DNA of 64,000 nt from Phallusia mammillata. Its lineage: Eukaryota. Positions 39,812 to 64,000 of this stretch are shown one piece after another. Where the stretch lies: positions 28,954,001-29,018,000 of the forward strand of contig OZ281495.1 of the NCBI GenBank assembly GCA_965637545.1, read 5' to 3'. The first letter of the stretch is position 1; each line of letters begins with the position of its first letter. Below the pieces are notes generated by a model. The model made no database searches, was not told where the DNA came from, and saw only the letters and a program-made list of their open reading frames with translations. The position numbers and the translations under genes were made by a program.

Positions 39812-40459
39812 TCTTTTCTCCTAATGTGTCACTTTTCTACGTCTATATACCCACCATTTCTGTCTATCTATACCTACACATATAAAAACAGTTTGGAGAT
39901 AATTTTCGCTCAAGCGGTGACTTGAACAGGTGTTTATGCTCGAATTTTTAAGGTTCGATTCTCATTAGGTTGGTGGCGCAACTTTAATGAAGAAACCACT
40001 TAAGCCAAACCGTTGCGGTAATATCAAACATATAAATCTACCATTTCTTACAGGTAAGACTCACCGTGACGTACCGGTCCGCGAGGAGTTGGTTACTGGG
40101 CCGTATAACTTTTCCCGTTGAATGGTTTAAAACATTTTGCCCATGTATACCGGGAATGATAAACTAATTTAAGTGTTTTTATTGCTAAATATTTGTAGAT
40201 TTTTAAAGACCGGTCCGCGGTAAAATTTCACTTTCAAAAACGATCCGCGGTGCAAAAAAGGTTGCCGACCCTGTTATAGCTGTTCAGAGCCTCAGGCGAA
40301 ATATGGTATTTACACACGAAATGACTATCCAAAAACTCGGCCATGCACGTAATGTGGATTACGAAAATAATGTGGATTTGGTATTTTAGTAATTTAAGTC
40401 AAGTTAAGCCTGTTGGTGGGTTTAACCAAGTCGATTTCGTTTTGAACATGAAACTCAAA

Positions 40460-41950: not shown

Positions 41951-43346
41951 TACCTTAACACTTTATACCAACGAATGAACAGTTCTACTTCATACCTGTT
42001 GTTCGAACGATACCTTCGCCAAAACCGCGCCGACACGCCATGCCGCTGTCTGGTGTGAATACCCTACCGTTTCCCGTCGAACGCAAAAAAACGCGTCGTT
42101 ATCCGCCAACCGCATCTGGTGTGAATGTCGCTTTAGAGCTAGTGTTGGTTAATACGCAACGCAGTTTCCTTTAAACAGTGCTTCTCGGCAAACGTCCACC
42201 ATAGGCCTGTGTGAAAACAATGTTAAAAAATGTAATGTGCTTTTATAGACGTGCGTAAATAAAATGTTTGGGAAACATTGGTTTGAGACGCTTGAAAATG
42301 TAACCAATGTCTGCTCGTTTGAGTCATTTCAGACTTATCTAGCAACATCATGCGTACTTACCACTTTAATCTTACGAGATTCTGTTGTACAGCTGCAATT
42401 AAAGCTTTAAAAAAAGTAGCTTGTTGTTTTTACCAAAACCACGATGAAATAATCAAATTCCTGCACTTACGACCCTCATTTGACCACATGGTTTTAAATT
42501 ACACAGCATTCGTCCCGTAGTTGGGCTTTTTGAAGTTTCGGGCTTTGTTTAAAAAAATCGATTTCGGGTGATGTTTCGAGCATGTACTTTTGGGTTAGAG
42601 GTCCAATTTCAGTACAACTTTCCACTGAAGATCAATGCAAACAATATGGTGCTACTTGAATAAATGTCCAATTGGTCCTGGTTTTGTTTTTGTGTATTAT
42701 ACAATTTTTGGGGATTCATAATGTGAACATTGCTAAAGCAAACATCAAGTTATCACTGCATTGGCCACTGCAGGAAATTTTGCATTGCTTTAATTTTAGG
42801 CTACTTGTTCCTCTTTCGCACTGGTTCATGAAGACAGGTATTAAGCGCACTTACATCCTTCCGTGTGCTTGCGTCGGATTATCACAAAGGCTTCATGCAC
42901 TCACTGCATGACTTTCCTGCAAGGTAGGTCGAATTTCAGACGCTTATGGGTTCAGCGGGTCTTTGTCAAGACTTAATTTTTAGCAAGGCTCGCAAACCTT
43001 TATTCCAGCAGCGGTTGGTCGATATTGAAAGCTTAGGCGATTCTTGGATAATCTAGGTTCTGCATTAAGAACAAAGTTATTTATAGATTTTGGTCTAAAT
43101 GAATAATACATGTTTACAATTGTAACAATGTCAGGGATATCAGTTTCTCAGTAATAGAAATCAATATGAAAGCACATTTTTCGTTTTGTTGCGATAAATC
43201 GTTTCCAAAGCAAAAGATGTATAACGTTTATCAACCTCAAACGGATCTAAATTGTTGACTTCGACGATGTTTAACATATTTTATAGTTGTTTTTGTAGCA
43301 AAGACTTGATTGTTAGGCTATGAATAACCAATACTTTGAAAGCAAC

Positions 43347-46300
43347 ATGAACACGACATACGAAGATCCAATACCAGCGATGGCCCAAGGTATTCTTTCG
43401 ACAATTCGGCGACGTTTCCGCCAGAACAACAGCTTTGATTCAGTGGCTTTTTCAAAATGCATGTCCACCCCTAACACTGAAAAAATATCTTAGCTTAAAA
43501 TTGTTACTTACCCAAAACTTGATGTAATGAATGAAGACCATTTTTAGGGTGGCGGCTACAGCAGTGCTGCATGTTATAACTTTAAAAAACTTCTAAGGTT
43601 GGCGCGTCATGCGTTAACGTATTTACCGTGAGCATGGCATCACAAAATTTGCAACGTGTAAATAAGGTTTTTTATAGCATTTAGGGAAAACGACATTTGT
43701 AACGTGTAGATAAGAACTGTTACGTTACCTTTAGGGAAACTTAGGTAAGTCTTTTTTTGTTTTCAGTTTGATAATAATGTAAAAATCGATATCTCTCTGC
43801 ATGCTGACTACCTTCACTTGAGCTATAGTTCTACCTTTGAAACAAATTCATTTCGTCGTGTTTATGTAGGTGCGACACAATCAAAAAATCGGTATGAGAA
43901 TCTGGCAGCTTTAGATGGTGCAAAACAGCAACCACCCTCTGGCTCTTCTCAGCCACAAATACAATGCCGGCAAAAGAGTTCAAGTTCAAGGAAAATGTAT
44001 TTTGGAGTTGTAGTATGTTTTGCATTCTGTGCAGTGGTGGTTCTTCTGTTAATTTTGATCTATTTGGTGAGTAATGTAATGTGTAAAATATTCAAAATGG
44101 GTTAATCAGAAACGCTGTGTGCTAAGATATAAGCCGGCAATATAATGCTTTTTAAGACTTTGTAGTTGTTTATTTAATTTTTATGGTAAGCTGCATACAG
44201 AGTACTTGATACACTCGATCTATAAGGTCGGATTAGTGCAGCTGGTGACCGCATAAGCTAATGTAGCGGCGGTCTAGTTTTTCAAATGCTATGCCTTCAT
44301 ACAGGTATTACTCATATGACAAACTAAGTCCTTTAGGTAAACTACAAACAGTGCACACTGTTTCGACCTATAAGGTCCAATCAGTGCATGTATGACATAA
44401 GCCGTTCTGGCTAATGTATCCATCGAACGGCTATTCATGCAGTTTGTTTTGAGTAACATGCTGTTCTTTATTTTTGGGGGAAATTTTTATTTTTACTTAC
44501 AGGGGCTCACCAACTTGTTAGCAGCCAGCAAAACGGGGCAAATTGCTAGTACTGGTAAGCATTTGCAGACTTTATGCGAAAACATAAATGCTAATTAAAT
44601 AAAATATTTTTTGCAAAGCTGCCACGTCTACCCATACGTCATGTTGGCATTTAAGACAAAATGGATTCACTGGTTCGGGCATCTACACCATTAAACCACG
44701 AAATCACTACCCTGCAATTCAGGTAAAGTGTCCCAGAAAATTGGCATTTTATAAAAATTGGCATATATTACATGGACTTTGTTAAGTTGTATTATTTATT
44801 CTTGTGGTCTGTGTGCTTTAACTGTCTTACAGAAAAATCCCCCTAAAGTGCTCATCAACTTAGTTTACTGTCACATATGCACATACAATAAGATCCTTGT
44901 ACAATTGCAGTTTTTTTTAAGTAAAGTCCCCCGTCCAAGGGGATCAGGTTTAAAATACTCCTGCTTTACAAGTAAATTACAATCGACTTGCCATTTTCTA
45001 TTGACTTAAATGACCAGTATGTTATTGTTGAATGCCAAGCGCAGGTGTTTTGCGACATGACGTCAGCTGAAGGAGGTTGGACTCTTGTGGCGTCAGTTCA
45101 CAAAGATAACAGGATCCAGAAATGCACGGCGCGTGATAAATGGGCAACTCCATCACCCAACGGAACTTCCTATTACACTGCTACTGGTAAAGCATATTGC
45201 GCATGTTTTCATTGAAATGCACACGTAAGGTCGTTTATACATTATAGGTTCTCCGAATTGGTACAATGGCATCACCTTTGGCAGCATCAATACCTGTTTA
45301 GGTGCTGACTACAAAAGTCAGGCCTACTACAGCCTCCCTGTAAGTTTGTTTTACATTGTAGTGAAAGTATCTATTACGGAAGTACCCAGGTCGCGCAGCC
45401 TAACAAAGCACATTTTATACACAACTATAAAAAAGTTCTAAGCCTAGCCTGAAATTTTTCAAGAAAATGTAACCTCGAGCCGGGAGTAGGATAAAGTAAG
45501 GTCACATTATCAAAATGTGGTTGATTGTGAAGATCTTTTATCACTAAAGCATATGGCAGTACCTAAACTCAAAAGCCTTTATTTTAATGATCTTTTTTAA
45601 CAGTTTTATTAAAGCAAAATAGATTTTTTGGCGAGAAGAATCTCATGGCACAAATTCAAGTTTATGGTAATATTATAACAACTTCCTGTTTGCTCTAAAA
45701 CTCTAACTTGCATTTAGGCCACAGACGTTATGGTTTCACATGTCCCAAACAACGTCCCTGTACAAGACATCGTAACTTCATCGTTTCTTACTTACTACAC
45801 GAATAACCAGTTCTTAAAACAAAAAGGTGGAAGCCTAAAAAACTTTTTTAGATACTACAATCCCTTGAACAGCCTTACTATTGTTGGTAAGTTTCATTAG
45901 TTTTTTTTTCGGATTCTAATTTGTAGAATCTCTTTTTCCTTAGTTAAAGATTTCAACTAAGGTATTTCAAAAGCAGTTTTTTTACCACGAGCCAAAACAA
46001 AATAGAACAATTAGGCACTTACCTTAAACGTTATTTATACATGATCGTTTAATTTGGACAAAAAAGCACAATTTAGTTAAGCAACATATTTGTTCACAGG
46101 GCTGAATACCAAAGTGCTTCAAAGCATTGGTGGCTCCCTGTTTCTGGCTGTAAATCCGTGGACGAACTACACATACCTTGCTCTGCCATCAGTAACATTC
46201 GCTCCTGCCCATTACCCCACATATCCTGTATTTGTCAGCAACGGATTTTCGGTACAATACAAAGTCGTAAAACTCTTGTATATTTAGGTTTCGTGCTCTG

Positions 46301-49300
46301 TTTGTATAGACTAGTTTTATTTTGTTAAACCAGAGGTCGGCAACCTGTTTTGTACCGCCGATTGTTTTTGAAACTGAAATTTCCACGCTGCCCGGCCTTT
46401 AAAAGACTACAAATCAAATTTTTGGCAATGAAAACGACTACATTAGTTTGTCATTCCCGGACTACATGTGCAAAATGTTTTAGCATTTAACCTGAAAAAG
46501 TATACGGCCCAGTAACGAACTTCTCGCGGACCACTGTTATAAACAACAAACGACATACCTTTAGGTTTCCTTCAGCTTGAACGATCAGCCTTACAAGCTC
46601 ATTAAACCTGGAATAAATTACACGTAAGTTAAGTAAACGCAATTACACAATGTTGATATTTTGACATACTTTATCATACAGGGATCATTTCAATTACCAC
46701 GTACTGGCCGTGAAAACCCAACCATTTATTATATTGGCGAGCATTGCCAACCAACGCGGTTTCAGTCGTTTTAGGATGAAGGTGAGTATTGCAAGTAACT
46801 TCTAAACTGCAGGACTTTCCTTATACCTGCTCGAATTTATTCACGTGGTTCGACTAGATCCGGTTTGTAATGTCTAAATAAAAACAAGCGCCTTTTAATT
46901 TCGATCAACTACAAACTTAGTCGATCTTTCCCGGGGACAAATCCCAAATATTATGAACTTTTAAAAAACGTCCTAATTATATGAAATTTTGCAAAGTTTA
47001 TTAAACATACTAAGTCCTCAAAGGTTATGTTTTGCCCCGTGGCACCACAACTTAACCAACTAATTCCTAAAATAGGTGACCCTTTTTACAATGTTCGAAT
47101 TGAACGAAAACCGGACAGCTTGTAGAATTTGTTATTTATTTTTTGTTTTACCCCATTATGTCACCACTTACTGCTTCGTTTCTTTGAAAAGGAACGTTAA
47201 ATAGGACATACTTCGAACAATATTTGGGGTAAATCTAGATTTATATAGTTTGTACTCTACATAGTATTATTATTTAAGCCCAGTGCCGATCATTGTGTTT
47301 TTACCTTACAACACGTTCACATGGTTATCTCTTGAAATGCATTATCTACAACTTTGCATGTGTGGGGACCCATGAGTTTCTGCTTGCGGAAACAACTAAG
47401 GTTATAAAAGACAGTGGATGATATGTATATAAATACCCATATATAAATAAGCATAGGAAATATATTAATGTTTTAAAATAGGTTATAGTGTATGTGCAAG
47501 GGCAATATGTGCTAAGCCACCTTTCTAGTTGAATTTACTATTTGTTCTGAAAATTTTCTTACTAATTTAGGTTGTATCAACTGCCAACTTAAACTCGGCA
47601 TATACGTCCACCCCACAAGTGCCTTACATGTACAAGGGCTACAGAATACAAATTGAATATGGACAACGATCTTTTTCCAATCCATTCTTTACCGAAGCTT
47701 TCTTTGTCATTGCAGGGACCCAGGTTAACATGATACGACTTTTGCTGCTAGGATTTTTTGTGATGCTCTGTTTTATAAAACTAGGAAGTGCTTAAAAACT
47801 TAAATTACACTTTTTAGAAGTGGAATGCTGCTACTTTTGATTTTTCGGTTCTTCTGAAACCTGTCGCAAGTAGTTATACCACTAACTTTACTACGGAAAT
47901 TCAACTGGGAAACAGGACACGAAACGTACTGGCCGGATACATGTTTCTTTATAAGTAAGTCCCCCATGTCATAGACTCAAGCAGTCAAATGCTTAAAAAA
48001 ATTGCAAACTTTTTCCGAATACGGACTGGGATATAGTAGGGCCATCTGGAAATATATATTAAAATGAGTAAATTAGATATACTTTTAGGAAATTTTTTTT
48101 TACAAAATTAAGGCCATGAAAAAAATTATAAAAATTAAGGCAGGTTTTGACATTCAAGGAGAGATAATAAAGATTTGCTTTTGGTTCATATAACTTAGTT
48201 CACGATGTCATACACTAACTTTAACAACCTACGGTTAAACAGGTTCACATAAAACAACTAAATTTGTGCACCCAAAGGTGGTAACCTCTTTTTAAAGATT
48301 TTAAGCAAATCTTTTAGGTATAAATTAAGTACAGTATTGCGGATAGCATGAAGTAATACATGCGTAAATACATGTGGATATTAAGAGAAATCTTATTACA
48401 AAGTACTTTCCAGGAACGCAGCTCACTTCACATATCCTCAAATGCAAGCTTTCGTCAACAAGATCGTGGATAATGCTGGTCAGTGTGTTTTTTACAATCT
48501 TTTGTTTTTTCATTTTATACGCAACGAATTGAGAAACCACAAGAGAATCATGCTTGTAATATCAGGTCGCGCTTGATATTTAATAAAACGGGTTTAATTG
48601 GGGCTTGACTTTTACACTCGGTAATATTTTCCCGCATTTTTACACATTTCGGACTTGGTTTGGGTCGTGTTTCGGGCTTGGACTTTCAGTTTCCTGCCTC
48701 TTACAACTCTGATTGTAACTGTAATGTTTTTAGTGGTACAATTAAAGCAAAAACGTTTGAAAATCCAAAAGGTTGCGTCTGGATTCGAACCAGAAATCAT
48801 TTTCACTAATTGAATATATTTTTGTAGTATAAAAACACAGTTTAAATGTTGAGCATCAGTGTATCTTTGATTAGGTCGTTCAAAGTATTTAAAACGAGTG
48901 ATTTAAAAACATCCTTCACGGTCTTTGAAGTTGTTTTCCATTATTTCAGCAATTTTTACCCAGTATCTGTAGTTTTTACACACGTAACCTAAATGTTGTT
49001 TTTCAAAACAGAGCACATTGCATTTTAACCCTGTCGTAACAACTAAGGTCGCCTAATTTAACCTAGTTTTACTGTTTAGAGTGTCCAAGAGTGTGAAAGT
49101 GTGAACGGCTGTATAAATACGAAACATACAATATGACATATTATTTTCTGCAGACAATTTCAATATTTACCAATTCAACCAAGCACCCCAAACCATTGTT
49201 CCTGTCTCATTTGCTAAGGGGAAAATCAATTACACCTCAACCACTATCCAAAGCGGATTTATTCAATTCCAAGCTTATGATAAATATGGATACAGTTATA

Positions 49301-49691
49301 CCATGTGCCCCGGTGTGAGGTACGATTTACCTTAAAGCAAATGGTAAACATCTCAAAATAAGCCGTGACATTTGAGTTTGTTTTAAAGTGTTAACCCATC
49401 AGTTGACCCTGCGCTTTACTGTATTGGATCTGCGAACAGCAAGCAAAACCATATTTCCCGTTGTGGCGACTTACCTGGTAAGTGTATTCAGCCGTCCGTC
49501 GATAAGTTGCCTGTCATTCTGTGTCGTTATTTTCACCTTTTTATATTCTGTGCTTACTTCCAGCTTGGGAGCAGTTAACTGATCACGTGATCACCAATCG
49601 GAGTTCCCGCACTGCCGGGAAATTCGTCAATGACCTTCACTCGACCTTGCTCATTTTCACAAGGGGCAAAAACATCACGGGACCGTTGTGA
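43347..49691 (+). CDS. Membrane-anchored intelectin-like protein A, 615 aa; exons 43347-43389, 43870-44066, 44503-44554, 44619-44722, 45045-45186, 45248-45339, 45718-45886, 46100-46251, 46565-46623, 46682-46781, 47571-47723, 47818-47954, 48414-48478, 49154-49319, 49389-49477, 49564-49691
   Basis: 1848-nt spliced ORF with all phases consistent. Intelectin motifs SCWHL..G..SGIYTI, FCDMTSAEGGWTLVASVH, KC...DKW, TFG....DYK..AYY, DVMVSHVPN, SGFIQFQ, MCPG, YCIG, RCGD, W, LLIFTR. Single TM MYFGVVVCFAFCAVVVLLLILIYL after a cytoplasmic tail. The first small exon is less certain. Confidence 0.85.
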
Positions 49692-52082
49692 GAAAATCCT
49701 GTTTAGCCAATACCTTGAACTCTGTGACTTTTCGTGATTTTTTCGGATAGTAATGGACGTTGTCCATCACACGTACGAAGTTTTATCATAGACAGATAAA
49801 TTACGGCGATCAGTTTTATATTTTCCGGGGCCATTGTAGGTTTATTATGCTATTTATTAGACAAAAGAAATGTTAAAACGTAAACTTTTCCCTACATATT
49901 GGTTTGTTTGCTTATTGTAAAAGTTGCATTGTTAGTTACCTGTGCCTCATAAAAATTAATTGCCCAATTTGTACCTTTCGTATCCCTACACGCATGCACA
50001 AAGCCAGTTAATCGACAAACAATTGCTTTGGCGCAAACACCGACACTTGTATTCTTTTACTATTTCTTTTTGAACTGGGTGTACTCGTAAAACGACAAGT
50101 TGAACAAACAAAGGGCTAGCAAAATATTTGTACATTATAAAATACCGTAAAGTTTTTGACTTTCCCAAAGGCTGGTTGTGCATTACAGCATTTTCATGTT
50201 TAAAACAAAAAATATTAAAATAAACTGATATTGTCCTGCAGTTTGGGACCAACTTCCTAGTGATACGAACGGAATCGAAACTCACATGAAGGTGGAAATT
50301 TGTTAACAACCATTAATCGACTTTGTGACGCCAATTTATTTGATTGTATTTCTCATTTCACGTTTGAAATTTTGTGTGGATGACAACGATTGGACTTCAT
50401 TTAATTTTCATTCGTTACTAAACACCGTAATAACCAACACATTAAAGTTGATAAACCTTTGCTTGTGTGTCTGTGTGCCTCCGAACGAAAACTTAGTATC
50501 TTGTTGTGACGCATGTTTAGAAAGTTTGTAAACCACTGATTTGTAGTAACCGTCGGTCAAAGTGATGCCAATATTAGTTTTTGTGCACGTAAATGCAGTA
50601 ACGAAAATCCAAAGACACTGCTACATTCCAGGCCTGACCTTTTTCGTGCAAAGTGTATCTGTTTTCCACATAATCCAAACGATAATTCGAAGTCTGATTA
50701 AATACGATAATTGCGTGTGACAAAGCAATATTGAATCTCTACAACAAGCAATCGATTCTACATAAATTTGTCAAACATAAAAGCAATGTCGAATAACCGA
50801 CTTTTTAAACATTTTAATTGTAATTACATAACTTGAGATAGATAGGTTATTTTTTCATTCCAGGCTACACCAAAAGTCTGCTAACATTCAAAGCAAAGCC
50901 ACCTAATTTGTTCAATTCACTTCATTAAAATAAAATAGCATTTTGCTTGAAAAGTCTTTGTCATTTTTTGAAGTATTCTTTAAATATTTCTGGGAGAATG
51001 TATGTTGGAAAAACCACCTGCCGTGTTAATGCAAACAAACGGTTGTTTCTCGTTAGATAATACTTATCAGTGTGTGTTTGACATCGCAAAGTCTAGTTGC
51101 TGGTCGGGTTTGTTACATGAAACACCTTTTCTCCAGTTGGTACTCAGTGACGAAGACGATACATCTGTGACTGGTAGTTAATTTAACGTGTGTGGGCTTC
51201 AGTGGTAGATAACGTTGCCAAGCTACTACACAGCAGAAGCTTGCAGAAGCTTGCGTTTTTGTCTGTTAATGTTTTTGTCAGGGCTAGTTAAGTTTGCTTT
51301 TAAATTATTGTTATGTGGTGACTCTGTAACTTGCAACTGAGCATGGAAATACGCTGCTGAGAAACATAGTCAGGACATTGAAAGCTTAATTTCGTTTAAA
51401 TGTCATCGCGCAGCAGATTAGCCAGAGCAAATTTATTGAAATTGGTGTCGAGGGTGAATGTTGCGCCTCTTTAGGGTGAATCGAAAATCCGAATTATGGC
51501 GACGAAAGTGTGAGTTTTATAATATTGGAGAGGATGGGGTCATGACCATGTGCTTTCCCTCCTGGGTGCGAAAATGAGTTCCTGCAAAAGCACAGTGTGA
51601 AACACCAAAACAGCACAACAATATATTGTTTGACACCTCATGTTCTTTAATTAACTGATTTTGCTTGTTTGATTTTTTTATCATTTTTAGGTAACTTGTT
51701 TAAACAAAGTGTGATTATCTTCTAATGGGACAAATATTGATAAGATTGGACGCTCCGAGTCTCGGGAAATGGTTTATCTATTCCAACCAATGCCACAGCA
51801 ATCGCGTTACGAAATGCGGGGTGCACATAAAACCTGCAAATCAATTTACGTCAACTTAATTTTACATTTGACTTGCAAGTATATCGTGAGAAACTATGTC
51901 GTTTGTTCGTGTGCCGCAACTTAAAGGGATTGGAAACACTGTTAAAATCATACACATATTACCCATTTTACAAATCGTATATTGCTTTGTCAACGCCTGT
52001 TTAGTTGCGTATAAAAACCAAAAATTATTTACTTATTCTTATATTTTTGTGTGACTTAAGGAAGGAAAAAGTAACATTCAGA

Positions 52083-55000
52083 ATGAATAACGTTGAAAAT
52101 AAGGAATGTGGAAGAAAAATTTCCTGGTCAAACCGTATGTGGATTTGTATAATATGGATTGCGTTGGTCACTACAGTATCGGCAATATTCTTGATCGTGA
52201 TCTTTGCTGTAAGTATTTATTTTGATAATGTTAAGTTTCTTTCCAATTTTAGATTCAGTAAGACTGCTACTCTGCCTGTGTGTCCATATAGTGTATATGT
52301 ACACACATATATAAGCAACACCAATTAAAAGTAGACTTTGCACGTTCATTGTGGTTTAACTTTAGGCATTCTATGAGGTTTTTAGGCTACGGCTTTTAAT
52401 TAGCTTAATTTGTTTAACTACCTGAGTTTTCAATTGCCTCTAACCTAATTGCCTCAGAGCCTGCAAATAGCGCTGATGGGTGTAAAACGCTCTGCAGTTC
52501 GGGCCTTCGGGTGACTGAAAAAAAGGCCTCATGATTTGGACCTTCTTTGTTAAAGTTTGTTGTATAACAAGTTTGCATTAGATAGCAGCGAGCTTAGTTT
52601 GAAACAGCGAGCTAGTTCGTTTCGTTGGCCAATTTAATTTCGTGACAAAACGATTTGGGGCAACTGATTTCAGTTACTTTACAAATCTGGCAGTCTGATA
52701 CGAACACCTCAATACAAATATATACATCTTGTTGGGGTTTGAAACAACATGGATCCGCAATCTCCGGCATCTACACAATCAAACCACACAAGAAATATCC
52801 AGCAATTATGGTAAGTTGTCCATGCAATTCATTCTTGTTTTTGATTATTTTGACTTGTTTCAATAAACAGAAGTTAAGTTGAGATTAAGTCAAATGGCAT
52901 TTACACACCCTTTTCGTCAACAAGCCTAAAACAAACGCCTAGAAGTCCTAGAAAAACCTAGAAAAAATGCAAAAATTCCATTCGTTGCTCACTTGGAATT
53001 TCGAAACGATGTAAAAATGTTACATTTGAAAAAAAGAAGTTATATTTGAAGGTTTATTGTGATATGACCTCAGCCGACGGAGGCTGGACTCTTGTCGCTT
53101 CAGTTCACAATGACGACAAACTCCAGAAATGCTCTGCACTTGATAAATGGGCAAGCCCAGTAGAAGATGCAACTTCTCTCTATACCGCTGCAGGTAACTT
53201 AAGATTTGCAGCTGATAGTTAAGGGATTTAAAGCTTCATACAACTTGTTAGGTTCATCTCACTGGTACAACGGTAGCAGCTTTGGAAATCTGCACTCATG
53301 CGTGGATAGCGACTACAAGAGCCCTGCCTACTATAGTCTACCGGTAACTTGCAGAAGTATTTTTTTCATTCTTGTGTATGATGTCTAAAGGTATTTGGGT
53401 GAAACAATCTGAAATAGTTGAGCACCGGTCCGAGAACGGCTCCGTTCTTGGATCAAAGTCACATGTTTTGTATTATCGTGAGGTTAATTAAACTGAGTCA
53501 AACAATTCTATTTGTAAGCCCTAAAGCAATATTATCCATGCTTAATGTGTCGTATTCTTGGCCAGCATGAATGCTTTGGGGCTAAGAGATATTTATAACT
53601 AAGAGATATTTATTAAAGAAGTATTTACTTGCGCTACAAATTATTGTTTATGTCGATTTCAAATATGAATGATACCCTAAATCTAAACCCTCTGTTATAT
53701 TTTTACTAGATTTGTTTTTGCATTAAACGTGGTTCCTTACCTGGGGGGTAATGGCATTTTTAGGGGTAAACTACATAGGATTAAATTGGGGTTAGCAAAA
53801 AATAGTATCTTGAAAAGGGTGTAAATAAACCTTATCAGGTTGCATGATGTCAGGGTTAACGATAATAAAAAGGTTTAGAGCCATTGAGTTAGCAGGATGA
53901 TTTTTCGGACAAATATTGTTCAATCTAACAACTTCAACTTGTACGTTCACAGGCTCAAGACATCATGGTATCACACGTTCCGAACTACACACCTGTTGAA
54001 GATATTGATTTGTCATCATTCCTCACTTGTTACACAGACAATCACTTTTTGGAGGCAAATGGAGGAAGTCTTCGAAACTTCTTCAATGATTATGCTTCTT
54101 TGAGAAGTCTTACCGTAGTTGGCAAGTGTTTACACCATGGGTCGGCAATCTTTAACATGCAGCGGGCCAAAACCGAGATCAGTCAAGTCGCAGCGGGCCG
54201 TACTAATTTTTCACTTTAAAATCCGTTTCCTTTACGGTTTAACATGTTGTTAAACCTATCGAATTTGGGTAGTTATTCTTACTTTTTGCCATCATTGCAA
54301 ACAATTGGACACAAAACCAGTCCATTAGCATAAACGTCCATGAACATTTTTACTTTTGCAGACGTGGGGCTGTCAACCACCTTAGTACAATCTTTGCGAA
54401 ACCCGTGATAAAACATTTAAGCTTAGTTTAACCCATCTTATGGTTTTCTAGCCACTTTTCTAAAAGGGCCGCGGGCAGGGTAATTTTGCTTGTCGGGCCG
54501 GATTCAGCCCGCGGGCCTTCGGTTGCCGAGCCTTGTTTTAAACAAAGGTTTCTTGATCCTGGGGATGCGTACCACCTGGTACGAAGCACCGACTAGGTGG
54601 TACGAATTAAGTATGAAGGTTGCGAAAAACAATTTTTTAAAAAGTAAGCTTTATTGTCATCTTTATTGTCATGAAGCTCATTTCATGTAGCTTTAACGGC
54701 AAAGAGATAAAAAATATCCACTCGTGTATCTGCTTGTGAGAATATTTGGTAATCAAAAACAATTCTCTCTAACCTAACTTTAAAAGTGATTAAAAAATAC
54801 ATAAAATTCTCTTACTGTCTGCTAATATAGCTTAACGTTTCAGTAAACTTTTTCGAAGGAATGAGCGAAAAAGTGCTTGAACTTATCGATGGGTCCCTCT
54901 TCACTGCTGTCACTACTTGGAGAAACTACACTTATCTGGATGTCACGACATCAACCTTTTACCCTCAGGATTTACCAACTTATCCGCAATTTGTGGATAA

Positions 55001-57947
55001 CGGCTTTTTGGTAAAAATCAAAAAGTTTGTTTTGCACCATGGTGGTAGTCACATACATACATAAAAATATTTCCGATTTCGTCTACAATAGTCAATCGAA
55101 TTTGCATGTCTGTCTACTTTAACATAGTTTACCATTAATAGTTTACCAGTGCCACGAAGTGCAAGCAGCATGACAAATAACTGAAAATTATTTTATTTTG
55201 GAGCCAGTGTTTTATTTCAACCACTGCCCTCGCAGCGTGCCTTTCGAAACCTTGTAGTCTGATTGGGTCAAATTAATTTAGCTTATTGAGTTTCTTCATT
55301 TATGTTTCTTCATTATACATTTATGCATTAATTGGAATTTGCGTTTTAGCACACCTAGATATGTGGGACATCATGTCTCAAACTTACAAACACAATTCAA
55401 CCAGGTACATTTTATACTTTTAGGTCTACTTCAGTGTAAACAATGAACCGTTTGTCTACATGACGGCAGGAAAATCGTATACGTAAGTGACATCACCAGA
55501 AAGACAAAATGTGAAAATCTAAAGCTTTAAACTTGTCTTTTAACAGGGACAAACGAAATTATCACATACGAGCCGAAAAAACGGAACCTTTTATTGTTTT
55601 GGCAAGTCTTGCAAACCAAGGAGGTTTTATCCGCTTTAGGCTACGAGTAAGTTAGGTTGATTGATCAAAGTTTTTGTGAATATTTTGGGCTTGGTACAGG
55701 AAATACAACCAGGCGTAGTTTTTCAAATGTGAACAAGTAGCAAGTGAGAAATTTCGTATCCCATTCTAAAAGTTTTCTTTCTTGTGGTGTCATTAGCACC
55801 AACGTACATACTTTTGTGTGAAGAATAGTCCAATTAGGAATTTCTAAAATGTAGATAAAAAAATACATTAAAATCGATGCATGTGTCACTTATGGGCACA
55901 AAAAGAGTAATAACGAACAGATAACTATTGTTGGAAAATACTGAACAAACGTTTCGTCCACAATGGTTGCATATCAAACAAATTTGTCGATCAACTCGAC
56001 CATTTATTTTTGTGCTTTTATGTAGGTTGAGTCAACCGTAGCAAAGGCCGCTCAATCGTCATGGCCAACTGTGAGTCCGTACGTGTACAAAGGTTTCACA
56101 ATTCAAATTGACTATGCAGCCAAAACAACCTACTACCCCTATTTTACACAAGTCTTCTTCGTCATTTATAGCACCCAGGTTAGGATTTTTCAAATAGATA
56201 CAAGTTACTTAAGTTGGTTCTTAAGTAGTTAAATATTTGTTTTCAGAAATGGAATGGAGCCCACTCTGACTTTGTAGTAGTTACTAAACCAGTTTATGGA
56301 AAAACGGGACACAATCTCACACTGGAATATCAGTTTACTGGCTCTTCCCGTAATGTAATAACCGGCTACATGCTGCTGTACAAGTTAGTTTATGCAATCT
56401 GCAGCAGTTATTTTCAACGAATAAGTTTCATTGGCTAATTCGTCTTTTAAACTGCTATTTCTAATAAAAACCAAGTTATTTAAACTAGCTTAGAGTCACA
56501 ATGAAAAATGTAAAACCTTCTAGTAATTAAAAGCTTGAATTTAATTCGTTCTCATAACAGAATCTCTGCCTGATTAGTAGTTTTAGGTCTGCGGGCTTTC
56601 TTAATAGGGCTTCCTAAACCTGTCACACTAACACTCCCCCCTAAGTCGTGATTGCCCACAATGCCCCGAACTCACTCCAATTAAAGCCCTAGTGCATTGT
56701 GGGTTTTGTAACGTTAAGACAATGTGGAACTTTTCTCTGTTTAGTTTAAATTTTATTCAGGTGTTTTTCTTCTTGATGTTAAGTAGTTTATTTATAGTAA
56801 CAACCCAAGTTATTCCATTATTTGATTTTGTAAATTTATCACACAATTGTTGACGAGCGTAATGCCAGGCTGCAATTAAATTCGTTTCGTTATAAATCCC
56901 GGCTTGAATCCCTTAAACTATAACTAAAAATGGTTTGACTGAATAATTTTATACAAAGCGACACGATTAAATTCGTTAATGAAGTAATTGTACCTGAAAG
57001 TGTACAACGGGCGAGTGCTTAAAAATTTATTCAGATTACCTACCAGCACAATGTCGACTGCACAAATCAAATCATTCATTGAGCGTATAGTGGACAACAT
57101 TGGTAAGAACATTTTTTTAAGATGTTTTTTTTGCCCTGTTATTTTGTAAAATTAACATCATTTCTCAACAGATACTTTGGACATTGTTCAGTTTAACCAA
57201 CCGCAAAATTTCATAGTCCCCATTACCTATGCAAAGGGTAACATTAGATGGAACTCTACTAATGTTCAAAGCGGTTATATGCAGTTCCAAGCATATGATA
57301 AATATGGCTACAGCTATGCTATGTGTCCAAGTGTGAGGTAGTATTGGGATCAAAGGCAAAAATATGTTAACACAAAGTTTTGATTTAGTTTTGTTATTAG
57401 TGTCAACCCACCTGGCGACCCAGCACTCTATTGCACTGGATCTGCAAACAGCAAACGAAATAATCCGTCTCGTTGTGGTGACTTTGCTGGTAAATCAATT
57501 TTGGCTCAAATACGTCTACTTGTTTCATTTCCGATTTACTATTAGCCCACCTAAGTATTAAAGACGATATAAATAGCAAGGCGGTGTGTAAGATTGGTGA
57601 CCACATGCAACAAAGACAGGATTTCTAAAGTACAAACTACAAACTATGGCAAACAGTGGGCTTCTTTTACCGTTTGGCATTACGTTTTACCATGTTTCCA
57701 ACGCTTTTCTGTGGACCATCTTTTGTGGCCTTTACCAATGGCTTTGTAGTTTCCATAGCATTTCGACAGAGTTTCGATTGCATATTAACAAATTAACACG
57801 TATCGGTTTCATTTTACAGCTTGGGACCAACTTCCTGATCACGTGAACACCAATCGGAACCCACATAAAGGCGGGAAATTTATCAACGACCTTCAGTCGA
57901 CCTTGCTTATATTCACCAGAAGCAAGAACATTGAAACGAACCCATAA
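52083..57947 (+). CDS. Membrane-anchored intelectin-like protein B, ~565 aa; exons 52083-52208, 52694-52810, 53052-53193, 53252-53343, 53953-54121, 54859-55010, 55424-55482, 55547-55646, 56026-56178, 56247-56383, 57035-57102, 57172-57337, 57401-57489, 57820-57947
   Basis: 1698-nt spliced ORF; exon sizes match gene A (142/92/169/152/59/100/153/137/68/166/89/128). TM MWICIIWIALVTTVSAIFLIVIFA; one GC donor at 54122. Start codon and second-exon acceptor are uncertain. Confidence 0.83.
54136..54535. mobile_element. Degenerate hAT-type MITE just downstream of the GC donor in gene B
   Basis: Termini CATGGGTCGGCAATC / GGTTGCCGAGCCTTG; TSD GTTTACAC vs TTTTAAAC (6/8); GCGGGCC subterminal motifs. Confidence 0.6.
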
Positions 57948-58267
57948 AATCATTTACATAGAGCAATTCCAAATCTAATAACTTTAGAATGTAATTTTTT
58001 TTAAAATATTATGCGTGAAATTTAATTTACACTTATGCGTGTCCTTTGCATTTGAAAATTTGATTATTTGAGTATACTGACTCAGTACCATACATGAGTG
58101 AGTGTGAGTACAATATCGGGCGTTCTGACCTAATTGTGATTCGGGAATATACTTTGCTCAACAGCACGTCACGTGGCCCGCAGCAGCCAATTGCAGGACT
58201 TTACCGATGTGACCTTTGCGCAAAAATAACATTCTCTGAGCATAGAGTACATTTCTTCGCAGCATAG

Positions 58268-58560
58268 TTGCGGCCCGGGTTCGGTTTCGGGCTGGGTTTG
58301 AACTTACGTTTCAAGAAACGGGCTTGATTCGAGCCTGAATCTACACTCCTTGTCAGTATTTTTTGAAAAAAAATTAACTTGCTAAGTAGGCAGTTGCCGG
58401 ACCTGACCTAATGCCAAACAGCCTTAAAACGCATTGCTCGTGACCAATTGTCTATATTGTGTGAGTTGTCTTGATCTTTCCTTGGGCTTCCTGTCAATCA
58501 AACTTCAGGTGCTACGGGCTTCCCAAAATCGACTCGGGTTTGGGCCCGGTTTCGGGCCCG
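58268..58560. repeat. TCGGGC/CGGGTT-rich dispersed repeat
   Basis: Clusters of TTCGGGC/CGGGCTT words; similar clusters at about 350-395, 42520-42570 and 48590-48680. Element class not determined. Confidence 0.45.
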
Positions 58561-59170
58561 TTTACAACTTTGCTTCGCAGTGTCGTATGAAAACCATACC
58601 TCCATTTTCGAAATGTTTTGACTCCCGAAGAGCCACCTTCATTTTTTAATTTGCCATATTTACAAAATCCACAACAAAATGGAGTGTAGAAAAACCTTCT
58701 TTCATTCAAAACAAATAAATAATCTGCGTAGCTCTGTGTAATTTATTTTTACAAAGCCAACAACTTTGTGCAAACAACTGTTTCTTATCAGTGCATATTT
58801 AACTGTGATAAGTTTGCTTTCGTTTTAACTTGGCAACAGCTATTGTATCTGTTACTTATTGACCAAGGCAGTATCGCTGTCACAAGCAGTTGTATGTGTG
58901 AGCCGCAGTCCCGACCAGCACTCTAGATTGGAAGGTCAGAAAGAGATAACTCATAAGCGGTTGTTTTAAAACACGTTTTAGTCAAGGCTGGTGCACTTGC
59001 TTTGGAAAAGGGTTGTTTGTTACCATGGTCCCCACAAATGTTGTTTTGTGTGTGACAAGGTGAAAGTATAATCACAACAAAATATTTTTAGTTTTTCTGC
59101 ATACAGGTCGTTAATAACTCACGAGATGTGTTAGTAAGGTTTCTTAGATTTTGTGTAATTTCAACAAGAA

Positions 59171-62100
59171 ATGGATAACTCTGGGAGAAGTAAGCAGTAC
59201 CAACAAATGTTTTCACCGACTAAGCATGTTTGGTTTTATTTTGTATCAGTTTTAATCTTCAGTGTTCTTTCCACAGTGTTCTTGATTCTCATCTACTCGG
59301 TAAGTTAATTGTCACTGCTGTATGGTTAATTACATTTTAAATGTATTTTGGGGCATTTTGTGTTTGAAAAGGCCAAAGACTTGGTTTGTGTGCTTCGTAA
59401 GTTATATTTGTAAAATGTCTTTTCAGTACCATATTTACATACATGCAGTAGGGTTATAATACATACTTAAACAAAACCAACTGTGATTTTTTCCCGTTTT
59501 TTTTTGATATTTTTTAGCATATTAGTTGTTCTCTCTTCAGAATTGGTTTCAGGAGATTAATATTCCGTATTTGTTTGCAATGACGTAACCCAGAATTGTA
59601 CTGATTAGGCTGGGAATTGCACTGTTCCTGGTCTCTACTGTAAAGCATTTTGATCACAACGTAGATATAACATTAAGTTTGCTGGAAAAATGATTTTTTG
59701 ACATGTTTATATTGCGTCTTAATACCCATGTTACGTTTAAGCCAATTGTGAAAGAGATTCATTGACATTGATATCCTTGTTCCGTAACACTATAACCGAC
59801 GTTTATGTTTTTCGATACACAATCGAAACTGCTTGTCTAATAACTAAACAATACATTGCACCGTGTTGTAGGCGACAAAAGACTTGAACATCGGCCAATC
59901 AACACCTATCTATACGTCGTGTTGGCATCTCAAAAAACATGGATTCAAAACTTCTGGCATCTACACAATCAAGCCACGTAAACAACATCCAGCAATTTCG
60001 GTAAGTGATCCATTTATCAATAATGGCATGTTAACCAGTATTTTTGGTACAAAGTGTAAAACTGGAATCTAGTTCGTAGTTTCAACACCTTAAATCCCGC
60101 TTGTAAAAAGCAACGGCTCAAAACTATTCTTTTATTAGCCATGTGATAAGTGCTCTTTGATACAACAACACAACAAACCGCACACCAAGATTTAGTAATC
60201 TCACAATTTCATCTTAAGATTGTGTTTAAATCGCAAAGGAAAGCAGGACAAAGTTAGGTTTGATCTTAAGGTGGACTTGGCTGCCATATCATTTGAGTAC
60301 CATTTTTTTCCTGGCAAAAAAGCCATGACAGTTTTAGCCCGATAAAATACCTGTATTAAAATATTTTTGTTTTAGATTTATTGCGACATGACATCAGCAG
60401 GAGGAGGCTGGACTCTCGTGGCCTCAATTCATAACGATGACCCACTCGAGAAATGTACGACACTTGATAAATGGGCAAGTCCATTTCCGGACGGGGTCTC
60501 CTTCTACACGGCTTCAGGTAACGCCCACAGCAAACAGTATACGGCGGTATACGGCTGTTCAAGTGCTAATTAACTCACTTTTTAGGCTCTTCGCATTGGT
60601 TCAACGGTAGCAGCTTTGGGAAACTTCAATCGTGCTTCAATAGCGACTACAAGAGTCCTGCTTACCACAGTCTACCGGTGAATCTATTACACTAATCCTT
60701 ATGATAAAACTTCGCCCTTCCTGCCTCTAAGCCAATCTAAGATTATAAGAGCGCTATACCCCAATAAGCTGCACACTTGGGCTCCAATCTCACTTTAAGT
60801 CTGTTTCTAACAGCTACACCCTGCAGGAAAACAATGTTAGGACGAACGCTTTGAATTTGTGGTGAAATTTTAAAACCTGTTTTAAAGTGGAGAGGGTTTT
60901 TGACTATTGCGTTGATTTTCTGAACCCTTATGAACAGATGTAAAATTTTATTTGATATATTTTATCTTTATTGTCAATAGTTCAAAGCATTTCAACTAAT
61001 CTGTTGCGTTGGGTTTCGTTTATATTAGTTTCCGCCTTAACCAGTGAGATGTTGTTCAACATTATGTTTTAACACACAAACAAGTTGAGTTGTTGCATAA
61101 AACTTTACAAACTTTTTTTTCAGGCTCAAGACATAATGGTGTCTCACGTCCCAAACTTCACTCCTGTTGAAGATATTGTTGGGTCATCTTTTCTCAGCTA
61201 TTACACCAACAATCAGTTCTTGGACGATTTCGGAGGAAGTCTAAGGAATTTGTTTAATGATTATGTTCCCTTAAGAAGCCTTAGTGTTGTCGGTGGGCAT
61301 TGAATATAGTTGGTTTTGGTACCACGGAAGAGGATAGTATTGCACTAAACTAAAATAATCACCAATCTGAAAATAATAACATACTAGTATAGAAAAAAAG
61401 CTGTGGGCTCAGTACCCTTACTACAAAGTAGAGATGTACCAAATATTCGGTTTGCCAAATTTATTCGGCCGAATCGCTCATTTTTGCAAAGATTCGGTTT
61501 CGGCCGAATAATTTGTTGCGATCCGGCCGAAACCGAATCTTTTAAGAACACAAATTTCAATCGTAAAACGTGTCTTTTTTGCTTATTAAGCTCCACGCAA
61601 TCTTTCAAAAGCCTAACAATAACGAAAATCGCGTCAATTTTTACCTTTTTCAACACATTATCGTTTTTCCCACTGTAGTCAAAAATTTGTAATTCATTGG
61701 CAGGTTGCCAATCATTCTTGAGGCAATTTTAAACCTCACAGAACTGAAATGAGTACGGAACAGAACAATTCTGCACTAATTGCATGGTAGATAAACATGT
61801 TTTCATGTCAAACGCATGGCGTACGGTTTCGCGTGACGTCATAAATGATTCGGTTGATTCGGCCGAATTTATTCTGCAAAACCGCCGAATATTCGGTTTC
61901 GGGCGAATCGAAATTTTGCCGATTCGGTACATCACTACTACAAAGACAGATTTATACCATGAATTGTCAGAAAAATAAATCACGCAACAACGTAATACTC
62001 TTTCAAAATGCTAACGTGTAAGGTTTGGTTGTCTTGGGTTGATGTTTAACTTTAGGTTTTTTTAAAGGAATGAACGCTAAAGTGCAAGAGTTGATCGAAG

Positions 62101-64000
62101 GGTCTCTTTTCACGGCCGCTACTATTTGGACAAACTACACTTATCTGGATGTCACAACTTCAACTTTCTACCCTCAACATCTACCAAGCTATCCTCAATT
62201 TACAGACAACGGCTTTTCGGTATGGTCGTCATTTTCGGGCGAAATGGTTTAACAACGCCAAAAATGCTTCTGGGCAAGGTCAGACAGCAGGCGTTTGCCT
62301 TGTTGCTTGATAGTACTTCTTTTTCCGCTTGAGGGCAGATGTGCGTCGACATAATTTATTATCTATCCAGACAATTAATCCAAGACTCACGACCCATAAC
62401 CATACAATAAGAACAGTTTAATAAGGTCTTATTACCAGGATAGTGGTATAGGGTTTTGTGCTTTATGTGTCAGAAAATTCTGTAGAACCGTCTCACGAAG
62501 TTTTATGAGATCCGCGAACCGGTTAGCATTACTGGTTACTGTTAATGGACTTTTTGTAACAGAACCGACTGAAAAATATGACTTTTTTGATAGAACCTGC
62601 TGACAAAAAATTTGAATCCCACCAATGGTTACAATCTAAACATATCATACACTATTTTATTAGGTCTACTTCAGTGTGAACAATGAACCGTTCGTCTATA
62701 TGACCGCAGGAATATCTTATACGTAAGTGACATTACAAGAAAGGCAAATACTAAACTTTGATAGTTAAACTTTTTTCATCAATAGGGACAACCGTAATTA
62801 TCACATTCGAGCCGAGAAAACTGAACCTTTTATTGTTTTGGCAAGTCTCGCAAACCAAGGGGGATTTAGTCGTTTTAGTCTAAGGGTGAGTGTTGATAGT
62901 TGTACAAGTGTATGTTTAAACGTAAAATTAAATTATACAACTGTATGTATACATTTATATATAAATGTAAAAAAATAAAGAGCATTTTGAACCTATTAAA
63001 ACCTTTACTAGTTGAGACAAAACTACAACTGCTTTTTTTTTATCTAGGTGGAGTCGATGGTGGCAAAGACCGCTCAAGTATCATGGTCCAATGTGAATTC
63101 CTACTTGTACAAAGAATACACCATTCAAATTGACTATGCAAGCAAAACAACATATTACCCCTATTTCACTCAAGTCTTCTTCGTCATTTATAACACCGAG
63201 GTTATATTTTGTTTTTAGTCTGGTTCAACTCAGTTTTATTTTAGTTCAAAAACATAAAAAATGTTTCTTAGTTTAAAGGCTTTTAAAAATGTTTTTAGAA
63301 ATGGAATGCTGCAAGTTCAGACTTTGCAGTAATTACGAAACCACCCAATGGAAAGAAATGGAACCACTTGACAATGGAGTATCAATTTACTGGCACAACC
63401 CGCAATGTCATAACAGGCTACATGTTGCTCTACAAGTAAGTTTTGCCGAAGCATTACTTTATCTGATGTAAAGTTTGAAAGGCAAGAACATTTTCCAAAA
63501 CGGAGTTAAATTAGAGTCTACTTGCTATTAAATAATTTTGGAGGTGTGAAAATTTTGAAAGGTGTGATCAACCTACTTGCTATTAGATGATTTTTTAAAA
63601 GTGTGAATCGTTAAACTGAGCAAGGTTTAGTGGCTTCCTAATAGACAATAGGCCAACAACTGTAAAACACCATTCCAGGCATAATGACAAAAGTGACATG
63701 GTGTGATGCAAAAATAAACGGGCGATTAGATTGTGATTTGAGTTGTTTAATGCATTTTGTGGTTTTAGATCACCTAGCAAGACAATGTCTATTGATGAAA
63801 TGAAGGTGTTTGTTAACCGTATAGTGGACAACATTGGTAGGTAAATTTGCGATCTTTTGTGCAACCCTATTTAGCTTGAAAACTGTTATTCCTGTGTCCC
63901 CAGACACTTTAGATATTGTGGAATTCAATCGGCCTTTGAATTTAACCGTTCCTGTTACCTTTTTGAAAGGAGAAACTACTTATAACTCCACCAATGTTCA
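59171..64000 (+). CDS. Membrane-anchored intelectin-like protein C, 3' partial; exons 59171-59299, 59872-60000, 60376-60517, 60586-60677, 61124-61292, 62068-62219, 62664-62722, 62786-62885, 63048-63200, 63299-63435, 63769-63836, 63904-edge
   Basis: Frame-consistent splicing with exon sizes identical to gene B; TM VWFYFVSVLIFSVLSTVFLILIYS; IYCDMTSAGGGWTLVASIH; same inserted domain. Confidence 0.85.
61429..61937. mobile_element. hAT-type MITE (TAG-terminal family) in a gene C intron
   Basis: TIR TAGAGATGTACCAAAT / ATTCGGTACATCACTA; perfect 8-bp TSD CTACAAAG; repeated ATTCGG/CCGAAT subterminal words. Confidence 0.88.
62441..62627. mobile_element. Second copy of the 8648-8857 MITE family
   Basis: Shares TTTATGAGATC.GCGAACCGGTTAGCATTACTGGTTACTGT.AATGGAC and the AGAACC..CTGAAAAATAT repeats; ends GAATCCCACCAATG. 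Confidence 0.8.

Follow-up and report, generated by a model that had tools for sequence, protein, structure and literature searches.

Intelectins, the X-type lectins built on a fibrinogen-related domain, are viewed as small lectins that are secreted and recognize the sugars of microbes. Canonical intelectins are secreted, approximately 313 amino acids (aa) in length, Ca2+-dependent, and multimeric (PMC8324875), whereas FIBCD1 is a type II transmembrane (TM) receptor that carries a fibrinogen-related domain (FReD) and serves as an endocytic pattern receptor (PMC9994688, PMC3908420). In this study we analyzed a 64,000-nucleotide (nt) stretch of the genome of the tunicate Phallusia mammillata (GenBank assembly GCA_965637545.1, contig OZ281495.1, positions 28,954,001 to 29,018,000, forward strand), the whole of which is referred to as the window, and in which the region from 43.3 to 64.0 kb holds three intelectin-like genes, A, B, and C. 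We consider it fairly probable that these genes are three old tandem duplicates constituting a lineage-specific family of type II split intelectins with a nested module, and that their products are cell-surface receptors. The gene layout appears to be undescribed, and full-text searches of the literature turned up no description of an intelectin that is split or anchored in the membrane.

Compared with the intelectins of known structure (ITLN1, Xenopus XEEL, and a lamprey-type serum lectin; 4WMQ, 4WMO, and 7E1E), the encoded proteins are alike in the motif of the N-terminal half (N-half) and in the alignment of its last exon, and by eye they are also alike in the order of the C-terminal motifs, which end in LL.F.R. 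They differ from intelectins in that a predicted signal anchor takes the place of the signal peptide, a 222-aa module is nested at the loop corresponding to ITLN1 residues ~192-204, and the N-terminal Cys used for trimer disulfides is absent. Their 543-565 aa, anchor, and insert set them apart from an ordinary intelectin of ~300 aa, which consists of one domain and is secreted by means of a signal peptide that is cleaved off. The nearest functional analogue is FIBCD1, which likewise combines a type II anchor with a fibrinogen-related domain at the cell surface. FIBCD1, however, differs in having a coiled-coil stalk and a classical FReD into which nothing is nested, and type II receptors of this kind present a C-terminal FReD with an acetyl-binding S1 site. 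The products described here have the signal anchor but no stalk, and their domain, which is of the intelectin type rather than a classical FReD, is interrupted and begins ~12 residues past the membrane. The first-pass annotation of this DNA had set the TM segment against canonical intelectins, which are secreted and have none; the novelty of membrane anchoring is qualified by FIBCD1, in which a type II receptor with a related fibrinogen-like domain is already known. The nesting itself recalls the integrin alpha-I domain, a module set into a surface loop of the host beta-propeller through adjacent N and C termini and forming the main ligand-binding head, a likeness that is architectural only and implies no homology.

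Gene structure and purifying selection

The region has a G+C content of ~37%, and short plus-strand open segments recur within it three times in constant order. Gene models, built by hand first and then by a phase-constrained search, placed three tandem plus-strand genes at ~43.3-49.7 kb (gene A), 52083-57947 (gene B), and from 59171 to the end of the window (gene C), which truncates the last of these inside the first exon of its C-terminal half (C-half). A common exon plan was found in A, B, and C, consisting of a TM exon, four N-half intelectin exons (e2-e5), six extra exons (i1-i6), and three C-half exons (c1-c3), and the intron phases were identical across the genes, in agreement with what had been read from the sequence in the first pass. 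All acceptors are AG and all donors GT, the sole exception being a GC donor after e5 of gene B. On spliced translation the open reading frame (ORF) of gene B runs uninterrupted for 565 codons, and the product of gene A comprises 543 residues when counted from the Met just N-terminal of the membrane segment.

The ratio of nonsynonymous to synonymous divergence (dN/dS, Nei-Gojobori) was 0.14-0.15 for the insert (199 aligned codons), 0.10-0.16 for the N-half, and 0.11 for the C-half, with a dS of 0.8 between B and C and values at or near saturation for A-B and A-C. Low dN/dS combined with high or saturated dS therefore identifies the genes as old duplicates under purifying selection. In a plain repeat search, DNA similarity between the genes was restricted to blocks matching e2-e5, i1-i6, and c3, and the introns of A, B, and C had diverged past recognition. 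The six extra exons are genuine coding sequence, as evidenced by the low dN/dS together with this confinement of DNA similarity to exons. None of the introns can be read through in frame, and neither a start nor a stop belongs to the six-exon cassette itself.

The intelectin-like halves and the carbohydrate-binding positions

The N-half, delimited by its splice sites, is encoded in gene A by e2 (44619-44722), e3 (45045-45186), e4 (45248-45339), and e5 (45718-45886), in gene B by 52694-52810, 53052-53193, 53252-53343, and 53953-54121, and in gene C by 59872-60000, 60376-60517, 60586-60677, and 61124-61292, all on the plus strand. It bears the motif C...G.SGIYTIKP...V.CDMTS..GGWTLVAS, for which e3 encodes the fibrinogen-related FCDMTS..GGWTLVASVH (FCDMTSAEGGWTLVASVH), and e3 gave a weak match to Pfam Fibrinogen_C (E 0.05). 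When e5 alone was compared with the PDB, it matched the serum lectin 7e1e (E 3e-4), XEEL 4wmo (8.5e-4), and ITLN1 6usc and 4wmq (~1e-2, up to 1.2e-2), the aligned part being residues 162-211 of the 333-residue 7e1e chain and 138-183 of the 306-residue 4wmq chain. The e3 motif and the e5 matches show that the N-terminal fibrinogen-related subdomain of intelectins is present. A homologue search from frames of the e5 and e3 regions, restricted to proteins of 0.55-1.75 times the query length, a range that leaves full-length proteins outside, returned nothing.

The C-half is encoded on the plus strand by c1-c3 at 49154-49319, 49389-49477, and 49564-49691 (stop TGA) in gene A and at 57172-57337, 57401-57489, and 57820-57947 (with the stop) in gene B; gene C contributes the start of c1 (63904..64000). 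These exons were placed by motifs recognized by eye, namely IVPV.F.KG, MCP, GF.QF with C.G following after 12 residues, CIG (in the form YCIG), CGD, W, DHV, and a C-terminal LLIF.R, gene A ending in LLIFTR. The length also fits, because ~120 chain residues remain after the e5 match in PDB intelectins and c1-c3 encode 127. From the order and spacing of the motifs, the C-half is probably intelectin-derived. The earlier claim of two intelectin halves thus stands for the N-half, where it has the PDB matches of e5, while the C-half is recognizable by its motifs only.

Taken together, the alignment of e5 to PDB chains and by-eye anchoring of the C-half indicate that the cassette replaces the loop at approximately residues 192-204 of ITLN1. 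The carbohydrate-binding residues of ITLN1 are 243, 244, 260, 262, 263, 274, 288, and 297 (PMC8324875), of which W288 and Y297 form an aromatic box, the sugar being bound via a Ca2+ ion (PMC12800186). The numbering of the human ITLN1 sequence used for comparison agrees with the residue identities given in those two papers (PMC8324875, PMC12800186). Alignment to it was by eye and was anchored on GF.QF, C.G, CIG, and CGD. On this alignment, we take seven of the eight sugar- or Ca2+-ligand positions (243, 244, 260, 262, 263, 274, and 297) to be replaced and W288 alone to be kept. Presumably K stands at position 243, Y at 244, N or Q at 274, and T at 297, while the residues we assign to 260 (D or V), 262 (A or P), and 263 (L or A) vary with gap placement. 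Between CIG and CGD, the A and B sequences are devoid of acidic residues, so that E274 of ITLN1 is without a counterpart. The canonical sugar site has probably been lost or remodelled, and although the evidence is of low rigour, it speaks against taking for granted that exocyclic diols are recognized as they are by ITLN1. By the same by-eye comparison, Cys199, which belongs to the replaced loop, and Cys259 are presumably both absent in A and B (c1-c2, 49154-49477 and 57172-57489), as would be expected if one disulfide had been lost along with the loop.

The six-exon insert

In gene A the insert exons lie at 46100-46251 (152 nt), 46565-46623 (59 nt), 46682-46781 (100 nt), 47571-47723 (153 nt), 47818-47954 (137 nt), and 48414-48478 (65 nt), for a total of 666 nt on the plus strand; these coordinates and lengths, first given by the first-pass annotation, proved exact, each exon lying between AG and GT. 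The corresponding plus-strand exons are 54859-55010, 55424-55482, 55547-55646, 56026-56178, 56247-56383, and 57035-57102 in gene B (669 nt in total) and 62068-62219, 62664-62722, 62786-62885, 63048-63200, 63299-63435, and 63769-63836 in gene C. The encoded insert is one residue longer in B and C (223 aa) than in A (222 aa), i6 being 68 nt long in the former two and 65 nt in the latter. At 666 or 669 nt the cassette is divisible by three, and it is flanked by two phase-1 introns, an arrangement classically taken to mark extracellular modules spread by exon shuffling.

As had been described, the insert is free of Cys (0 residues), rich in Tyr, Phe, and Thr (25-27% of residues), and conserved in the three genes, with the motifs W.NYTYL, YP.F..NGF, PFI.LAS.ANQ.GF.RF, Y.YK, FT..FFVI, KWN, and RNV..GYM.LYK all present. 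A crude propensity scan assigned ~42% of the insert to strand, in at least 10 short segments, and found helix propensity only in the 10 residues at its N-terminal end and the 15 at its C-terminal end, which agrees with the earlier description of a module bracketed by helix-like segments. Comparison with hhalign led us to reject both an internal repeat, since no self-repeat was found, and a duplicated piece of the lectin, since there was no similarity to either half.

No relatives of the insert were detected at the level of single exons. Searches of PHROGs and NCBIfam with exons i1, i3, i4, and i5 of A and B gave no match, the same four exons of gene A had no Pfam match at E <= 1, and neither an i4 profile against the PDB nor i4 of gene B against the ESM Atlas gave a match. 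The exon-level Pfam search (E <= 1) and the PDB search with the i4 profile also cover the guess that the insert is a ConA-like or LamG jelly roll, for which they gave no match. When 1.84 billion representative proteins were searched exhaustively with HMMER and an i1 profile, the only hits were two leucine-rich-repeat (LRR) proteins, matched via a short repeated motif, ...GSLP..IGQWTNLTYLDVS..., and we judged them to be due to chance. Two scans of viral contigs and scans of metagenome and prokaryote genome contigs, made for bacterial or phage relatives, gave pattern matches only, none of which was confirmed. These negatives are weak ones, as queries of 33-51 residues miss distant relatives and the proteins of this species are apparently absent from the libraries. 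They nevertheless accord with the first-pass statement that the insert could not be assigned to a family, and the insert may possibly represent a domain family that has no database description.

The conserved i1 stretch I.GSLF.A...W.NYTYLDV (46126-46200, 54885-54960, and 62094-62170 in A, B, and C) resembles one plant-type LRR unit (GSLPSQIGQWTNLTYLDVS), and this likeness alone accounts for the two LRR hits of the exhaustive search. Because it occurs as a single copy per insert, we treated the likeness as a coincidence.

Predicted membrane anchor and cytoplasmic tails

Each protein contains one strongly hydrophobic segment of 19-23 residues near its N terminus (Kyte-Doolittle mean over 19 residues of 2.6-3.3, with a peak of 3.33 in gene A), and the same analysis revealed no second hydrophobic peak in the A, B, or C protein. 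Several Lys or Arg residues are found N-terminal of this segment and an acidic or polar segment follows it, after which the first lectin Cys is reached ~10-12 residues beyond the membrane. The single TM helix proposed in the first pass agrees with these features. An uncleaved type II signal anchor is the likelier identity of the segment, because cleavable signal peptides typically have a shorter hydrophobic core.

In gene B the first exon (52083..52208, plus strand) supplies the ATG, an 18-aa tail, and the TM helix, with an in-frame stop 81 nt upstream, and in gene C the TM exon occupies 59171-59299 on the same strand; the hydrophobic segment begins at residue 19-24 in these two proteins. The 5' part of gene A (43320..44070, plus strand), modelled from frames and splice candidates, may open with a coding exon at 43320-43389, which is uncertain and would start at either 43320 or 43347, and contains a TM exon whose open frame extends from 43767 or 43870 to a donor at 44070, the TM helix falling at ~44004-44066. 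Sequons occur throughout the ectodomain, and the NYT of i1, part of the W.NYTYL motif, is kept in all three genes.

The cytoplasmic tails (43320-44070, 52083-52140, and 59171-59235) are mutually unrelated in sequence and length. That of gene B has 18 residues and no Tyr, that of gene C has 21 residues with YQQM, and that of gene A is probably longer, with YENL and possibly YEDP, the frame being open far upstream of the TM segment.

Alternative explanations

Several observations weigh against a family of anchored, insert-bearing split intelectins. Four small RNA-like contig sets of the same species were mapped to the region, and they show no splice junction of gene A, B, or C. Their coverage is almost wholly of intronic repeats (44.3, 46.3-46.6, and 46.8-47.6 kb), and the sole coverage outside these is one low-depth contig of 153 nt on e3 at ~96% identity. 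The mapped part of this contig begins 3 nt before the exon, and its initial 35 nt have no placement, as might be seen if it came from an e2-e3 spliced transcript of the gene or of a close paralogue, but this proves nothing. Neither singly nor as two-sequence profiles do c1, c2, and c3 match any PDB intelectin at E <= 10, and the mapping of binding residues, made by eye against the human ITLN1 sequence, is of low rigour. The 5' end of gene A is ambiguous, in that the TM-exon donor must be 44070, which is weaker than 44066, if the frame is to continue into e2, and in that the first exon (43320 or 43347 to 43389) joins in frame only to the weak acceptors 43870, 43909, and 43915. Finally, as the cassette is divisible by three and lies between phase-1 introns, skipping it preserves the frame, and an insert-less isoform with e5 joined to c1 is possible.

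Such skipping, if common, would make the usual product an insert-less membrane intelectin and the insert-bearing form a minor or tissue-specific one. The e5-c1 join does keep the frame, and the mapped RNA-like contigs show no junction that would speak against it, yet the insert is constrained to the same degree as the lectin exons (dN/dS 0.14-0.15), its exons have been kept with canonical splice sites in all three old duplicates, and the join would leave ...LTIVG-DNFNIY... without a counterpart of the ITLN1 loop, so that we find this explanation distinctly unlikely. The products could also be soluble lectin-like factors, if the hydrophobic segment were a long signal peptide or the ectodomain were shed, as might be imagined from how near the segment lies to the N terminus (it begins at residue 19-24 in B and C) and from the secretion of canonical intelectins (PMC8324875). 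A core of 19-23 residues is long for a cleavable signal peptide, however, at least 18-21 residues with several K or R precede it, the frame of gene A extends much further upstream of the TM segment, and the tails of A and C contain Tyr motifs; we regard soluble products as unlikely.

A more radical view is that the lectin fold has been lost and the halves persist as scaffold remnants around a new domain, or that the C-terminal exons are not intelectin-derived at all. The failure of the c1, c2, and c3 profiles to find a PDB intelectin at E <= 10 and the difference, by eye, at seven of eight ITLN1 carbohydrate-binding positions speak for it, but the motif order and spacing match the C-terminal third of intelectins by eye, the 127-aa C-half matches the remainder of the PDB chains after the e5 match in length, and the C-half evolves under a dN/dS of 0.11, leaving this view with little probability in our estimation. 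Less credible still is the notion that the gene models are artefactual or the genes decaying pseudogenes, for instance with insert exons that belong to another nested gene. Such a notion could draw on the missing transcripts, the one GC donor in B, and the awkward 5' end of gene A, but it must contend with three copies in which the exons keep the same strand and order and have compatible phases, with a cassette that has neither start nor stop of its own, with the intact ORF of gene B, and with a dN/dS far below 1 and conservation limited to exons. We consider it extremely improbable.

Proposed architecture and significance

The architecture claimed in the first pass (anchor, N-half, phase 1-1 six-exon cassette, C-half) holds at the level of gene models and selection; the structure of the mRNA and the topology of the protein are inferred, as are how and how independently the insert folds and what the protein does. 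In the anchored split-intelectin arrangement that we favour, each product would be a single-pass type II protein with a cytoplasmic N terminus and an uncleaved signal anchor, and its ectodomain would open with the intelectin domain ~10-12 residues past the membrane. The cassette nested in the loop at ITLN1 ~192-204 would encode a Cys-free, strand-rich module, the helix-prone ends of which probably run side by side as a connector, so that the module could project outward, its base enclosed by the lectin core. The proteins would then be cell-surface recognition or adhesion receptors. Because nearly all ITLN1 sugar positions are replaced, the binding surface would most likely be provided by the insert or by the remodelled lectin site and not by a canonical Ca2+/exocyclic-diol site, and the differing tails would couple binding to different intracellular responses or to different sorting.

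A family of this kind, anchored, poor in sugar-site residues, and hosting a module, would show that the intelectin scaffold has been re-used for surface receptors in the sister group of vertebrates. Its tandem arrangement, old constrained duplicates, and differing tails resemble other expanded invertebrate recognition families, and the family is therefore a candidate for a role in tunicate innate recognition or self/non-self biology. More speculatively, and with what we would call a rather low chance of being right, the cassette may be an unclassified extracellular fold that forms the ligand-binding head of tunicate-specific type II receptors, encoded by dozens of genes in the genome, provided with interchangeable tails, and carried on an intelectin scaffold that is silent both catalytically and as a lectin. 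If true, this would make the family a candidate non-self, allorecognition, or gamete-recognition system.

Other features of the locus

The e5 donor of gene B (54119-54127) reads TTG followed by intronic gcaagt, whereas A and C have GT at this point. GC-AG introns are rare yet functional, and the donor could be either part of a working GC-AG intron or an early sign of decay. No Rfam family was matched in the region, and a search of the window upstream of gene A for further paralogues found none, only a common intronic repeat turning up.

In gene A, RNA-like contigs pile up at 46840-47623, within the i3-i4 intron, and at 44292-44487, with summed depth to ~4000. The contigs carry numerous variants and have loose ends, behaving as an abundant transcribed repeat family would, and they do not reflect expression of the gene. 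The repeat in the i1-i2 intron of gene A (46332-46535) recurs in inverted orientation at 40072-40273 with ~65-75% translated identity, and is a dispersed element that does not belong to the gene.

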